From the NCBI GenBank assembly GCA_002794465.1, contig MTSL01000169.1:149931-181930 (forward strand): 32,000 bases of DNA, written 5' to 3'. How positions within the stretch are numbered: the stretch's first letter is position 1; the number at the start of each line of letters is the position of its first letter. The DNA comes from Paramicrosporidium saccamoebae KSL3. Lineage: Eukaryota > Fungi > Cryptomycota. Positions 10,293 to 32,000 of the stretch are shown piece after piece. A program made the position numbers and the translations under genes. The notes beneath the pieces were generated by a model. It was not told the DNA's origin and did not search any database. It was given only the letters and a program-made list of their open reading frames with translations.

Positions 10293-10429
10293 CCTGAATT
10301 TGCTAGATTAAGCGAGTCATTTCGCACATTAAATCAACAGCATCTCTCACATCATACTTCAAATACTCGCTCATATCCCATTTTACACCAGTAGTACTTG
10401 CTTATGATAAAATAATTTAATTATCTTTG

Positions 10430-11318
10430 ATGCGGCGAGGACTATTTGGGATTGAGCCGGGGCCTTGGAGACTGCCACTTGGCACCAAGACTAGCCGAGG
10501 AAGCCCTACGGCACAGCACAGCAACACTCGCCCGTACAAAGGGCGCCGCCAACCAACTACCGTGACGATCCCGATCCTTTGTGATTCCGCAAAGTCGCCG
10601 AAATCGGTGTCCACGATGACCCTCTCTACATCAGCCGGTAAGCTCTGCGAGATAAGCGTACGTCCCTGGTGAGTGCGTTTATCTCGCTTCTTCTATGGAT
10701 TCTAATTCCGTAGATCCAGATTATTCCAGTACAGGGACGTCGCCTGGCGCGCGTCTTGGTTCCCGTTCCGTAAAAGGAGGGAGGCGCAAGAACCCGCCAT
10801 CCCGGTCCGTCTCACCCTCCAACCAGGCCGCTGGCGTCCTTTTCCGCATGTCTCAGGGCTCTGTCATCGAATCCATCTGTGTGGGCGACATGCGAGTATC
10901 TTCGGCCATGTCGTTGGCTGGCACCCCATTGCCACCCCCAACTCGTGACTATGGCTTCTCATATGCCTCCAAGGAGCGTCGTATTGAGGAGCCAACTAAG
11001 CCGGCGACCTATTCGCCATCGTCTCACGAAAATTTTGATGAGGAATACGATTCTATGGAACGCACACCAACCCCCAGTGCAGGACGTGGACGCAGTCGCA
11101 AGACGACCCATCCACCGACCCCGCGTATGTGCATCTCCTGCGGAGCCACCAAAACTCCGTACTGGCGTGAGGCATGGTCCTCTTCCGTACTCCTCTGCAA
11201 TGCCTGTGGATTGAGGTTTTCAAAGTTCCGTCGTCGTTGTCTGGATTGCAGCTACGTTCCGAGGAAGGAAGACAAGGGGAGCAAGGCTTGCACCAAGTGT
11301 GGTGGCCCATGGTCGTAG
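10430..11318 (+). CDS. Ash1-like GATA zinc-finger transcription factor, about 270 aa if intron 10638..10713 is spliced; the alternative ATG at 10695 gives 207 aa
   Basis: C-x2-C-x18-C-x2-C finger (CISC...TPYWREAW...LCNACGLRF) followed by a second CxxC-x13-CxxC module. The gtaagc donor at 10638 and the ctaat/tag acceptor at 10713 are phase-compatible with the upstream ATG at 10430. Confidence 0.8.
10638..10713 (+). other. 76-nt structured intron containing a 15-bp stem-loop (10647..10687)
   Basis: Arms gcgagataagcgtac and gtgcgtttatctcgc pair at all 15 positions (13 Watson-Crick, 2 G-U) around an 11-nt loop. Confidence 0.7.
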
Positions 11319-11761: not shown

Positions 11762-14729
11762 ATGATGACTGCTCTTAATGCAGTCGATGTGGAACATCTT
11801 CGGCGCACTCTCAACGAGCTTGGCTATCGCGAAACTGTAAATTCAGATTCTGCCCCGCTCGTGCACCACATTCTTACCGATTTGAAACAGGCCACTCATC
11901 AGTACACAGACCTGCTGCAGCACTATGACGACTTGTTCGCTCGTTGGCAGCAGGAGAATGAAAAGTCGCCACCGAATTTAGATATTACCCATCTGAGTGG
12001 TCTTGATTACAGCATGCTGGGAATGGACCAGGCTGTCAATGACTCTTTTATTTTGCGTGCCGTGGAGGACGCACGCACCAAGATTGATAGTCTGTCTGCC
12101 GAAGTGCACGGGTTGAAGCAGGAGACGGCCAAGTTGCAGAGTGAGAAAGAGGCTATACAGAAAGAATTACAACAGTCACAGTTGACAGCGCAGGAATTTT
12201 CCCAGTTATTACATGGGAAGCATGGGCAAATGGATGCCCTAAAGGTAGAGCTGGAGAGCCAAAGAAAAAAGATGGATGTCGGCTATTTGCTTCAGCTTGG
12301 GTCTCTGGTCAAGTCTGCCATTTCCATGGTCCCGGACGAGCTGCAATCCGCCTTCAGTGCCAAGGCGTCCGATTCTCCAGAGTCCCAGATTAGTCTTCTC
12401 TCCGAGATTGTTCAGCGGATTAAAAGGGATGGTGAAGCCAAGATTACAAAACTAAGAGAGGCTTTGGAACAAGTCGAGCAGTATCGGAAGGAACGCGAGT
12501 TGGCAGAGGCGTCAGCCATCAAGATGAAGGCAGGAATATCGCAGTATCAGGCTCAGATTGCAGACTTGAATTCTCGTCTTAGCCAAAGAGAATTTGAAAG
12601 GACACTGCAGTCAGATGTAATGCTCTAAATCATTTCTTACCGCTTTTAGTTGTCTTTGCAAATTTCATCGCTGGAAGGGATCAACAATATGATCAGGGAT
12701 AAAATTGCGGTCCTCGAACGTCTAGGACATGAGGGAATCGGTGGAGCCCTTAATGTTTACTCCATGATTCATTCTGATTATGTAGGGTGAGCTGGCTCAT
12801 ACCACCGTGAATGCTCTGTTGGAGAGCTTATCGGCGGAGCTCAATACGGAAGTCTGCTTTTCCAGCCATCTGAGCCAGCTGGTTGATAAGCTCAACAAGA
12901 GACGTACAGAGCAAGATCAGCAAATTTCTCAAATATCGACTCAACTACGGGAATGCGAGAGCCGCACTGCATTGCTGGAGACGGAAAAGGCCGATCTGCG
13001 AAGCAAATTAGAAAAGGCACTGACTGATCTCTCGCGTAAAGATGGCTCCTCAACCACCACGAGTGAGGTCATCCACAATTTGAAGCAGGCAGTGGATCTT
13101 AAACACTCCAAGATTGAAGAGCAAAAGAGTACACTGTCATCATAGGTTCTGACATTAGAGTACTGCGGGGAGTTGAAAGCTGCTCTGGAGCAGTGTCAAA
13201 TTGCAATGGCAAATATGCGACGAAATGAAGAAATGATCCGCCAACATGTTGTGGCCCAAGATGACGAGATTCGCAATGCCAAAGTGAAGTGCGAGCAAAT
13301 GTCTGCAGAGAAAACAAAACTGTCGTGTCGTGTCACTGAATTGGAGTCGGAGCTGGTAATGGTAAAAAATGCATTCAAGGACAAGGCCGACGAAGGACAG
13401 CAATCCGTCAACAATATAAAGTCACTGGTCCTTGCCAAGGAAAAGGCAGAGTTGGACTTGAAGTCTGCCAAGGATCATGTTCGCGAGCTCGAAGAGACAC
13501 TCCTGGCCAAACGGAAGGAAAAGGATCTACTCATGACTACCTATTGTCGAGTAATCAAGGACAACGAGAGACTACATGCCGATTTGCAAAAACTCCATGA
13601 TGATTATGTCAATAGTAAGGCCGGAGATTTGCAGTCAGAAACGGCCTTGAAAGCATTCCAAACGAAGATCCAGGCTCAAAATCAAGATTTGGAGCGTCTC
13701 CGCACCCAAATTTCTCAGTCAGAGAGTAAAGTGAGTGAGTTTGAGAGCAAATTACAAGAAGCCCAGAGAGCCAAGAATCGAGTTGACGATGAAGTCAGGG
13801 ACAAGAGCCGAGAAATATCATCTTTGAAGGGAGTGATCCAGTCACTTGAACGCTCAAAACGAGACATTGCAGCTCAAATGTCACGATTTGGCCAACAAGC
13901 AAATGAACTTAGGGGCCATCTTCGACGCGTAGAGGAGGAGCGGGATGGGTTACAAAGACACTTAAAGTCTTCATCGATGGATACTCCGGCCAGTAGGGAA
14001 GTGCAAAATCGTCTTGTCAACTTGACCATGGAACTGGATCAAACGAGATCGCAACTGCGGCACATTGAACGTGAAAAGGATGCTATTGCACAGCAGCTGA
14101 AATTGGAGAAATTACGGGCGTCACAAATGGAAGAAATGATGGTTGAGGAGAAGAGCAAAAGACTTGAAAAGGAAAGTATAATTGCTGGTCTTGAGAATGT
14201 TCGTGGAAAGTTAAAAGGACAGTTGAACGTATTAAGCGAAGAGCACGACAAGGGAGTGTCATCCATGCGACGCCAAATGCAAGCGACTCGTGATGAAAAT
14301 GAACGGCTGCGGAGGGAAGAACGAACTTTTTCAGACCACTTTCCACGCAGATCCACCCGCCACGTTACTCCATCACCACCTGACAGCCCTGTGGAAGATG
14401 AAAAGTACCACGGCACAGAAAAGTTGAAAGTTCAAAACCGTTTTTTGAAAAAGCATCTTTCCGATATTCGGAATGAGATGAAACAGACCCTTTCTCCTGG
14501 AAAAGTACTCAGTCCTGATTTGGAGTCGTCAATTATTGCACTGACCAGCGAAGACGCAGACGAGTCAACATCACCAACATCTGATGAGATTGTCTCCAGC
14601 AATGCCGAGATTAGACGAAGACTGGAGCATGAGAATCGCCTTTTATTCAAAATTGTTGATAAGGTAAAATCCGAGCTCATGCGGGCAGGATTGGACACTC
14701 CAATGTCAATATCTTCTTCCAACTCGTAA
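11762..14729 (+). CDS. CEP135/BLD10-like long coiled-coil protein, about 957 aa; introns 12617..12649, 12755..12785, 13129..13158
   Basis: N-terminus LRRTLNELGYRETVNSDSAPLVHHILTDL resembles the conserved CEP135 N-terminus (IRKRLDQLGYRQTL...LPLVEKLFSDL, recalled). The rest is heptad-rich. Three introns join the exons in frame. Confidence 0.7.
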
Positions 14730-31929: not shown

Positions 31930-32000
31930 GCAAGTTTGGTTTAGTGGTATAATTGCCGCCTGCCACGCGGTAGACCCGGGTTCGATTCCCGGAACTTGCA
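31930..32000 (+). tRNA. tRNA-Gly (GCC)
   Basis: Acceptor stem GCAAGTT/AACTTGC plus discriminator A; D-loop TAGTGGTA; anticodon stem GCCGC/GCGGT with loop CTGCCAC (GCC at 31962..31964); T-arm CCGGG-TTCGATT-CCCGG. Confidence 0.96.

Follow-up and report, generated by a model that had tools for sequence, protein, structure and literature searches.

In S. cerevisiae, intronic zipper stems (among others in RPS17B and RPL7A/B; PMC12350175, PMC2536676, PMC12311795) leave the canonical splicing signals free and tend to cover cryptic sites, and both their primary sequence and their presence vary, with poor sequence conservation and a stem in only some orthologous introns. These stems draw the 5' splice site (5'ss) and the branch point together, and structure in yeast introns is found preferentially where cryptic splice sites lie (PMC12350175, PMC2536676). 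In Microsporidia, a family of long introns about three times the usual size, found in the Poly-A-binding and S23 genes, carries a conserved stem-loop and is spliced best (Whelan et al. 2019, PMC6349667). The same phylogenetic neighbourhood includes the amoeba parasite Paramicrosporidium saccamoebae, the sister of Microsporidia, whose S23 gene contains a 120-bp intron belonging to that family (PMC6349667). Finally, fungal TPP-riboswitch introns place structure near alternative GTs, the inner sites giving non-productive mRNA.

The intron considered here lies in a stretch of 32,000 nt of P. saccamoebae DNA, which we call the window. It is a genuine and already annotated 76-nt GT-AG intron (10638-10713, GTAAGC...CCGTAG, + strand), the first in the GATA-factor gene PSACC_02669; GenBank PJF17576.1 is the exact translation of 10430..10637 joined to 10714..11318, and P. 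saccamoebae RNA-seq went into the MAKER annotation (PMC5701793). Like other spliceosomal introns, it has a frame-restoring donor, a branch-like motif and an acceptor, and its position is kept in orthologs. The gene is laid out as follows.

10616..10637, + strand: exon 1 as read from its conserved ATG (ATG ACC CTC...), encoding MTLSTSA plus 1 nt; phase 1
10638..10713, + strand: intron 1, 76 nt, GTAAGC...TAG, annotated in PSACC_02669
10701..10706, + strand: putative branch site TCTAAT; its A at 10705 would be the branch nucleotide, 8 nt before the 3' splice site
10714..11318, + strand: exon 2, the remainder of the GATA-type zinc-finger protein

The protein encoded by exon 2 contains a C-x2-C-x18-C-x2-C motif and a C-terminal C-x2-C...C-x2-C motif. 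Residues 147-178 match Pfam PF00320 above the gathering threshold (E = 5e-10; 39.2 bits against a cut-off of 26.8), and the C-terminal ~60 residues are almost invariant among 18 orthologs. We infer the branch site at 10701..10706; both the orthologs and the short introns of the window have a yTAAy motif equally far from the 3' splice site, and the branch region GAUUCUAAU agrees with UACUAAC at 5 of 7 positions.

By the standards of its surroundings this intron is long. The preliminary description gave 27-38 nt for the other introns, in good agreement with the 12 frame-restoring introns of the window that we spot-checked after a loose GTA/GTG scan and inspection by eye, which measure 27, 30, 30, 31, 31, 31, 33, 33, 35, 36, 37 and 39 nt. 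Their donors (12 checked) amount to little more than GTA+N3, the normal 5'ss-to-branch offset in the window is 19-33 nt (median 23), and 10638-10713 is the only oversized intron found. The excess length is shared by relatives. In nine orthologous loci of environmental Paramicrosporidium-like lineages (handles L001 and so on), exon 1 likewise ends in phase 1, the donor begins with GTA and the acceptor reads TAG|ATCC, the orthologous first introns measuring 76, 93, 102, 117, 130, 75, 96, 214 and 213 nt; other introns are ~30-40 nt in genomes where this one has 75-214 nt. Clade-wide, then, the first intron is two to six times the standard mini-intron length. The start ATGAC(C/G) and phase 1 recur in all orthologs, with an exon 1 of 22, 31 or 82 nt. 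The introns of L036 and L038 carry stops or frameshifts, and their removal is therefore required. A protein-alignment scan of metagenomes brought up distant GATA genes and one ortholog of 44% identity, the latter left out of these comparisons.

More than half of the intron is taken up by one inverted repeat, which the preliminary description placed at 10647..10687 with 15 of 15 pairs, two of them G-U, and which we find exactly so.

10647..10661, + strand: hairpin 5' arm GCGAGATAAGCGTAC, pairing with 10673-10687
10662..10672, + strand: hairpin loop, 11 nt, to which the MFE structure adds two weak inner pairs
10673..10687, + strand: hairpin 3' arm GTGCGTTTATCTCGC, pairing with 10647-10661

The 15 pairs are consecutive, and the G-U pairs are 10656-10678 and 10659-10675. 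Folding of 10630-10720, which the preliminary description had proposed as a check, gives a stable RNA (-35.5 kcal/mol, z = -4.6, with 0 of 200 shuffles as stable), against -25.2 kcal/mol (z = -2.4) for the antisense strand; the z values of the hairpin against shuffles range from -4.6 to -5.9. When 45-nt windows are slid along the two strands of the 32 kb (21,304 in all), the hairpin ranks first at -24.5 kcal/mol, the mean being -6.9 (sd 3.5) and the runners-up reaching -22.3. MFE and centroid structures are identical, and the ensemble holds no mutually exclusive alternative fold. The hairpin is real and is exceptional for the window.

What might such a hairpin do? Based on these observations, we posit that the stem-loop is a constitutive architectural element that compacts the intron, a tentative reading to which we assign a probability of roughly 0.4. 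In this model, 41 of the 76 nt would form a very stable stem-loop starting 9 nt after the donor, and the 5'ss-to-branch distance, 67-68 nt along the linear sequence, would shrink to a linker of ~26-27 nt, near the ~23-nt spliceosome norm. Burial of any GT inside the hairpin would be a side effect, and the surplus sequence would probably be kept for a GATA motif, of which there are two here, one per arm. We infer that the hairpin forms in vivo, that it aids splicing and that the GATA motifs are used. One argument for compaction we do not accept. The preliminary description subtracted the hairpin from the intron and arrived at a normal 35 nt; the arithmetic is right, but we reject effective length as evidence because dinucleotide shuffles of the intron interior give exterior paths (MFE-based effective distances) as short as those of the real sequences.

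Conservation of the stem, on which the preliminary description had made its proposal depend, is borne out in the sister lineage. L001, the closest (93% protein identity), and L002 keep the hairpin with 14 of 15 pairs, one C-G pair having become U-A through a double change and both G-U pairs having become G-C; the sole pair-breaking change in L001 turns A-U into A.C. Hairpins are also present in L003 and L007, whose proteins are just 68-72% identical. These two share a CGAG...CUCG helix base and differ in their G-U-rich interiors (5 and 6 G-U pairs), a homology that rests on manual comparison, MAFFT having left L007 and the L003 3' arm out of register. In the window, L001, L003 and L007, the single hairpin domains start at +10, +10, +10 and +11 and span 41-54 nt of introns of 76-96 nt, and the leftover linkers of 26, 26, 30 and 34 nt are close to the normal 5'ss-to-branch distance of 19-33 nt. 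In L005 and L037, a long hairpin directly follows TGATAAG. The 102-nt intron of L004 is essentially unstructured (MFE -8.8, z = +1.6), and the 213-nt intron of L038 has no more structure than its shuffles, so a hairpin is not obligatory for splicing long introns in this clade.

Has selection maintained the pairing? Between the window and L001, the retention of at least 14 of 15 pairs after five transitions in the arms has p = 0.36 and the retention of folding energy p ~0.09; the pair-preserving substitutions therefore do not prove selection. A Fisher combination of sense-strand p values over independent lineages yields ~0.002 with the window and ~0.03 without it, and taken together the sequence evidence for selection on pairing is modest. 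A rival reading is that the palindrome is functionless, a product of chance or a mutational quasi-palindrome (e.g., from template-switch repair) that has yet to decay in a young lineage. Such an origin would suit the neutrality-compatible substitutions between the window and L001, the near-neutral divergence of the arms (25 of 30 positions identical, against 76-77% at neutral sites), the other hairpins of -22 kcal/mol in the window and the L004 intron, which manages without structure. It would leave to coincidence that the first-ranked fold of the window sits in the one oversized intron found there, that the L003 and L007 helices, in genes so diverged, agree in start offset and base sequence, and that the intron shows zero indels relative to L001, whereas intergenic DNA shows many. 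We regard a functionless palindrome as unlikely.

Compaction invites comparison with zipper stems, which are defined by a stem of 6 bp or more lying between 5'ss and branch point; here a 15-bp stem occupies intron positions 10-50, upstream of the putative branch A at 68. The distances, 9 nt before the stem, 17 nt after it and a linker of 26 nt, fall outside the zipper thresholds of PMC12350175, which are derived from yeast. In the yeast A-complex model such an arrangement would be sterically impossible, yet it matches the ~23-nt norm of P. saccamoebae. The host intron is also far shorter, 76 nt compared with 300-500 nt in the yeast cases. As in zipper introns, the canonical signals are free, GT-like sites tend to be covered, the primary sequence is poorly conserved and only some orthologous introns have the stem.

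The resemblance to the microsporidian long introns is of another kind. Both are rare introns about three times the mini-intron length (76 nt against 27-39 nt here, and 76 nt in E. cuniculi too), retained despite genome reduction, and both contain an internal stem-loop with G-U or compensatory changes. Unlike that family, the present intron lacks CTGA and TGATGA anywhere in 10638-10713, its host gene encodes a GATA factor and not a Poly-A-binding or S23 protein, its putative branch site, UUCUAAU, is probably not of the family's hyper-extended, U2-complementary type, and its sequence is not conserved across the gene family.

The region upstream of the conserved start codon bears on how the 5' part of the gene is read.

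10406..10425, either strand: another tail-to-tail pair (GATAA...TTATC), just 5' of the conserved leader; not conserved in L001
10430..10615, + strand: highly conserved leader, in GenBank a 62-codon N-terminal extension
10473..10484, either strand: candidate promoter element, read by eye: an inverted repeat TGCCACTTGGCA with the family consensus CGCCACTTGGCAC

Relative to L001, the leader is 93% identical with zero indels, compared with 76% identity in the intergenic DNA upstream; its differences fall 5/3/5 over the three codon positions, and those of exon 2 fall 9/4/46. The upstream in-frame ATG is absent from seven other orthologous loci. The inverted-repeat motif lies ~130-200 nt before the start codon in the window, L001, L003, L004, L005, L006, L007 and L038. 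The leader is probably non-coding, a 5' UTR or core promoter.

The arms of the stem are themselves inverted GATA motifs inside a GATA-factor gene, a feature that the earlier reading had missed.

10650..10656, + strand: GATA motif AGATAAG, within the 5' arm
10678..10684, - strand: second GATA motif AGATAAA (TTTATCT on the + strand), arranged tail-to-tail with the motif in the 5' arm at a centre-to-centre spacing of ~29 bp

GATA factors often autoregulate through GATA sites. Yeast Dal80-type repressors use paired sites spaced 15-35 bp apart, DAL80 and GAT1 have such pairs, and the vertebrate GATA1 and GATA2 genes have intronic enhancers. Here, too, paired WGATAR motifs stand in the 5' part and first intron of a GATA-factor gene, at a spacing within the Dal80 range. 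With an inverted GATA site in each hairpin arm, autoregulation at the DNA level is a serious competitor of compaction or a second role beside it: the palindrome would be a candidate auto- or cross-regulatory platform of paired WGATAR sites, with the RNA hairpin as its by-product, and the two roles could coexist. The change that breaks a pair in L001 (TTATCT to CTATCT) still fits WGATAR. L003 retains the 13-mer CGAGATAAGCGTA even after loss of the sequence that it would pair with, leaving AUAA in an internal loop, and TGATAAG stands at the same intron position (+16/+18) in L005 and L037; the 5' motif is thus found in the window, L001, L003, L005 and L037. The window contains three GATAA-N10-35-TTATC pairs where 0.72 are expected, and two of the three lie in the 5' region of this gene. 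Strand preference points the same way. The preliminary description took the G-U pairs, which pair on the sense strand, as a sign of RNA structure; this fails in the nearest relative, where the sense A.C is G.U on the antisense and the antisense strand folds better than the sense, as expected of a strand-neutral palindrome.

Other observations weigh against an account in DNA alone. A complementarity of 15 bp far exceeds a motif of 6-7 nt, and the compensated pair lies outside the motif. L007 keeps a 15-bp helix and has lost both GATA motifs; intronic WGATAR is absent from L004, L006, L007, L036 and L038; and the 3' motif is confined to the window and L001, being missing in L003, L005 and L037. 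The lineage-specific second site and the extended complementarity also set this locus apart from known GATA autoregulation, and the sites here are predicted. The promoter pair is not kept in L001, and the window has no surplus of AGATAAG (3 found, 3.5 expected). On balance, we consider a DNA-level role of the palindrome a doubtful but substantial alternative.

Could the hairpin be a splicing switch? That was the proposal of the preliminary description, in which folding would choose between the productive distal donor at 10638 and two unproductive donors within the hairpin.

10658..10663, + strand: buried donor-like GTACGT, in the stem; GCACGT in L001 and L002
10669..10674, + strand: buried donor-like GTGAGT, at the loop/stem edge; GCGAGT in L001 and L002
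10695..10697, + strand: in-frame intronic ATG, a possible start on an intron-retaining mRNA (MDSNSV + DPDY...)

Much of what was said in its support is accurate. Both hexamers are where they were said to be; splicing from 10669 would create TG|A and stop at once, splicing from 10658 would shift the frame and stop after 19 codons, and retention does meet a stop at 10670-10672 and leaves an in-frame ATG at 10695. GTACGT could plausibly act as a donor, since donors in this genome are little more than GTA+N3, and the geometry is coherent: unfolded, the internal GTs would be nearer the branch point, and folded, they would be occluded. The alternative donors, however, are not conserved with the structure. 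Both are GC in L001 and L002 while the stem persists there, the U of GTACGT occupying a stem position where U-G and C-G pairs alternate. None of the 12 donors checked has the G at +3 that GTGAGT carries, and introns from 10658 or 10669 would measure 56 and 45 nt, also outside the normal sizes. The absence of TPP aptamer motifs, already remarked on, extends to aptamers and Rfam families generally: at gathering thresholds the only Rfam match in the window is a tRNA at 31930-32000, and a permissive scan of 10350-10850 returned chance-level matches (E at least 0.88). With no aptamer, no conserved alternative donors and no alternative fold, the locus differs from TPP-riboswitch introns. The intron, its donor and acceptor and the hairpin hold up from that proposal, and the regulated switch between donors is not supported; we judge it very improbable.

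Retention of the intron deserves separate comment. It had been counted as unproductive, but the ATG at 10695 would give the same protein bar the first 6-7 residues, and an equivalent in-frame ATG exists in L001, L003, L005 and L037. In 5 of 7-9 related lineages the length of the intron is divisible by three and no stop interrupts it. A retained intron is no dead end, since what follows is either an ATG in frame or a 3n intron that stays open. Is it possible that both levels are used, one 41-nt sequence coupling transcriptional autoregulation to splicing efficiency, with the DNA palindrome serving as paired GATA sites for the factor that the gene encodes and the RNA hairpin making an oversized intron spliceable or gating its splicing? 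In an extreme version, the GATA protein may bind the RNA stem as it would its DNA site, the one mimicking the other, and so control its own splicing or retention isoform. We think such coupled use has very little chance of being right; if it were, the excess of stop-free in-frame introns in relatives would be the mark of a regularly retained, regulated intron.

A further possibility is that the hairpin has a purpose unrelated to spacing, as a protein site for autoregulated splicing or as the source of a stable RNA from the spliced intron, an idea put forward for the microsporidian long introns. Excess intron length persists in very compact genomes, structured long introns occur in the wider clade, including the S23 intron of P. 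saccamoebae itself (PMC6349667), and yeast has autoregulatory intron structures in RPL22B, RPL7B and RPL30 (PMC12311795, PMC13232506). Such a purpose sits poorly with a GATAAG block as the only family-wide conserved sequence, with the lack of the microsporidian CUGA and UGAUGA motifs, with a 15-bp stem too short for Dicer-type processing and with the empty Rfam result, and it seems to us quite unlikely. Two other identities were considered and rejected: an intronic snoRNA or miRNA, the stem being too short and box motifs absent, and a MITE or introner origin, since the element is single-copy in the window and lacks a target-site duplication.

In total, the element appears to be a fixed fold holding surplus length and GATA motifs, and not a splicing switch. 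Speaking for compaction are the top-ranked fold in the only oversized intron found, the helix kept in L001 and L002 and the start offset of +10 or +11 in L003 and L007 despite differing spans and intron lengths; speaking against it are the essentially unstructured intron of L004, the shuffle-like one of L038, the equally short shuffles, the drift-compatible pattern between the window and L001 and the strand flip in L001. The locus is an annotated intron with a previously unreported, unproven structural element; it is not a demonstrated riboregulator.

If the compaction model is true, a spliceosome tuned to introns of ~30 nt would tolerate longer ones when structure restores the native spacing, here with a 26-nt linker far below the limits of yeast models. 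The zipper-stem idea would then also apply to genomes with mini-introns that stand at the base of Microsporidia, and a third gene would join those with the puzzling retained, structured long introns of this clade. The GATA motifs in the arms, for their part, offer a concrete candidate, open to experiment, for how this parasite, with a 7-Mb genome and few transcription factors, might autoregulate one of them.

The ORF downstream of the 76-nt intron at 10638-10713 encodes a small GATA-type zinc-finger protein (Pfam match PF00320) of Paramicrosporidium saccamoebae, a member of the Rozellomycota, sister to Microsporidia. A 93% identical metagenomic protein, P0001, belongs to the 90% cluster that also contains GenBank PJF17576.1 (270 residues), entitled [quoted passage not shown]. 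The translation of 10430..10637 joined to 10714..11318 matches PJF17576.1 exactly; the intron had therefore already been annotated, with the donor and acceptor given in the preliminary description. The P. saccamoebae gene models come from MAKER, for which a Trinity RNA assembly served as evidence, and the genome paper makes no mention of introns (PMC5701793). Metagenomes and Logan assemblies supplied the orthologous loci (L001/L002, L003, L004, L005/L037, L006, L007, L036, and L038-40); protein identity to the window GATA factor is 93% in L001/L002, 72% in L003, and 68% in L004, and the gene order DnaJ, GATA, coiled-coil is common to most. The downstream neighbor (11762-14729) encodes a long coiled-coil protein. 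Its orthologs (L004 3934-6300, L007 2290-3633) match Pfam CCDC39, a ciliary family; for an organism said to have no flagellum this is odd, and mere coiled-coil similarity may explain it. The right-hand end of the window is occupied by a tRNA gene (31930-32000; Rfam RF00005, 65 bits).

The GenBank model starts at ATG 10430, adding 62 residues (10430-10615). This stretch looks like an unusually conserved noncoding leader: it is 93% identical to L001 without indels, its differences fall 5/3/5 by codon position (no third-position bias) versus 9/4/46 in exon 2, and seven other orthologous loci lack an in-frame upstream ATG. The true start codon is probably 10616. About 130-200 nt upstream of the start codon, an inverted repeat, CGCCACTTGGCAC (TGCCA-CT-TGGCA), is kept across the family; X-box/NFI-like by eye, it is a candidate binding site of a dimeric factor.

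Window 10473-10484: inverted-repeat motif, seen by eye
L003 ~2848-2860: counterpart
L006 ~2198-2210: counterpart
L005 ~2155-2167: counterpart
L007 ~258-270: counterpart
L038 ~2306-2316: counterpart

The intron itself reads GTAAGCTCTGCGAGATAAGCGTACGTCCCTGGTGAGTGCGTTTATCTCGCTTCTTCTATGGATTCTAATTCCGTAG. At all orthologous loci, the gene starts with ATGAC(C/G) or ATGATC, and intron 1 runs from a GTA donor to the acceptor TAG|ATCC and contains a branch-like motif, yTAAy/CTGAC; exon 1 measures 22, 31, or 82 nt in the orthologs, with phase 1 throughout. Intron 1 of L036 and L038 contains in-frame stops or a frameshift, and splicing is therefore required there. The lengths of intron 1 in the window and its orthologs are 76, 76, 93, 102, 117, 130, 75, 96, 214, and 213 nt, whereas the other window introns are short, as had been described (27-39 nt in the twelve checked), and candidate introns in relatives measure about 28-44 nt. 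Because intron 1 is long throughout the orthologs, its extra length is an old, maintained trait of the GATA gene, not a P. saccamoebae peculiarity.

The described hairpin is present in full: 10647-10661 and 10673-10687 form 15 consecutive pairs, including two G-U, and enclose an 11-nt loop. Folded as sense RNA, 10630-10720 reaches -35.5 kcal/mol (z = -4.6), a value matched by 0 of 200 shuffles; the antisense reaches -25.2 kcal/mol (z = -2.4). When the 32 kb is scanned in 45-nt windows, both strands included, the hairpin ranks 1 of 21,304 (-24.5 kcal/mol; mean -6.9, SD 3.5); with runners-up at -22.3 kcal/mol, it marks the far end of a tail rather than a class of its own. The second and third most stable folds, 10951-10995 (+) and 11079-11123 (-), also lie in the GATA gene, in exon 2 (-22.3 and -22.2 kcal/mol). 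A second small stem of 8 bp (10692-10714; UCUAUGGA/UCCGUAGA) is predicted to pair the 3' splice-site AG and to expose the putative branch motif UUCUAAU as part of its loop; L001 keeps only 5 bp of it, and L003 lacks it.

Does the hairpin choose between productive and unproductive donors, as first proposed? The frame arithmetic for donors 10658 and 10669 and for retention was correct. However, the closest relatives, L001/L002, keep the hairpin and lose both buried donors (GTACGT to GCACGT, GTGAGT to GCGAGT), which decides against the switch reading. The U of the buried GTACGT is a stem position alternating between U-G and C-G; real donors in the window show little beyond GTA+N3, and GTGAGT is atypical at +3. 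Introns from 10658 or 10669 would measure 56 or 45 nt, beyond normal size. The MFE and centroid structures of 10630-10720 are identical, with no competing fold, and Rfam matched nothing in the region, whether the thresholds were curated or permissive. Nor would retention be a dead end: translation from the in-frame ATG 10695 of a retained transcript would leave the protein unchanged except for MDSNSV replacing MTLSTSA, and L001, L003, L005, and L037 have an equivalent ATG. The switch is not supported. Conserved AGATAAGC (10650-10657) and the genuine donor context GGTAAGC (10636-10643) are alike except at the first intron base; we speculate that the former could serve in RNA as a U1 decoy or pseudo-5' splice site.

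In five of the 7-9 lineages, intron 1 is a stop-free multiple of three (post hoc Poisson-binomial P of ~3e-4 versus shuffles), and its retention would add 25-39 residues in frame.

L003 3023-3115: stop-free 3n intron 1
L004 3023-3124: stop-free 3n intron 1
L005 2346-2462: stop-free 3n intron 1
L006 2448-2522: stop-free 3n intron 1
L007 430-525: stop-free 3n intron 1

Prokaryote-style gene calls of these lineages (P0002, P0003, and P0008) run uninterrupted through intron 1. The pattern suggests a family in which retention is tolerated by design, the reverse of a productive/unproductive switch; the bias toward a frame-preserving intron 1 is family-wide.

Evidence that the hairpin is selected as RNA is mixed. 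In its favor, extreme stability is seen in two genomes. L001/L002 keep 14/15 pairs, and the L001 stem shows one C-G to U-A double change and G-C at both G-U pairs. Single hairpin domains begin at +10, +10, +10, and +11 in the window, L001, L003, and L007, leaving linkers (the nucleotides that lead from the 5' splice site to the branch point once the hairpin is set aside) of 26, 26, 30, and 34 nt despite spans of 41-54 nt and introns of 76-96 nt; in ordinary introns, this offset is 19-33 nt (median, 23). A CGAG...CUCG helix base is common to the window, L003 (distal helix expanded, 5 G-U pairs), and L007 (15-bp helix lacking the GATA motif, 6 G-U pairs in the domain overall), and these G-U-rich stems strongly favor the sense strand (-29.4 versus -20.6 in L003, -38.8 versus -20.9 in L007). 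In L005 and L037, the equivalent place is taken by another long hairpin. By our own arithmetic, Fisher combination of sense-strand shuffle P values over independent lineages gives ~0.002, or ~0.03 without the discovery lineage. On the other side, the 102-nt intron of L004 shows no structure (z = +1.6), the 213-nt intron of L038 no excess over shuffles, and the helices of GC-rich relatives no significance against shuffles. The L001 substitutions fit neutrality (P = 0.36 for at least 14/15 pairs, ~0.09 by energy), and the stem arms are 25/30 identical between window and L001, with neutral sites at 76-77%. The argument that G-U pairs favor RNA over a DNA palindrome is lost for L001, where an A.C mismatch on the sense strand lets the antisense fold better (-31.1 versus -26.2). 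The normal size reached by subtraction (76 - 41 = 35) carries no statistical weight, since the MFE effective distance is just as short when the interior is shuffled.

An interesting twist, overlooked in the preliminary description, is that the hairpin arms within this GATA-factor gene are themselves inverted GATA motifs (AGATAAG, 10650-56; TTTATCT, 10678-84, AGATAAA on the minus strand), tail to tail and about 29 bp apart. The main rival, given evidence on both sides, is thus that these paired sites would serve autoregulation at the DNA level. The sole pair-breaking L001 change, TTATCT to CTATCT, still fits WGATAR; L003 retains the 13-mer CGAGATAAGCGTA despite loss of the partner strand; TGATAAG occurs at +16/+18 in L005 and L037; and of the window's three GATAA-N10-35-TTATC pairs, two fall in the GATA gene 5' region (0.72 expected in the whole window). 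Yet five lineages lack an intronic GATA motif, the 3' site is confined to Paramicrosporidium proper, and arm complementarity reaches well past the motif. Another tail-to-tail GATAA...TTATC pair, at 10406-10425 just upstream of the conserved leader, is not kept in L001.

The closest working analogy for the hairpin is the yeast zipper stem, which draws the branch point and the 5' splice site together, is poorly conserved in sequence and patchy in orthologs, and belongs to structure enriched over cryptic sites (PMC12350175, PMC2536676, PMC12311795); the GATA-intron hairpin would work alike yet falls outside the published yeast rule. The closest phylogenetic precedent is the microsporidian long introns of the Poly-A-binding and S23 genes, which have a conserved stem-loop and are the best spliced; that of E. 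cuniculi likewise measures 76 nt, roughly threefold the usual size, and P. saccamoebae S23 carries a 120-bp version (PMC6349667). Size ratio and stem-loop are shared, but the GATA intron lacks the CUGA/UGAUGA conserved region and has a different host gene. We class the feature with structured long introns whose stem resembles a zipper, as a new and still unproven case; the original observation is confirmed and its interpretation is partly supported, for the structure and not for the switch. Quite possibly, such a role of the hairpin coexists with autoregulation at the DNA level: the GATA motifs may be why the extra intron sequence is retained, and the hairpin may be the way to render that sequence harmless to a mini-intron spliceosome.
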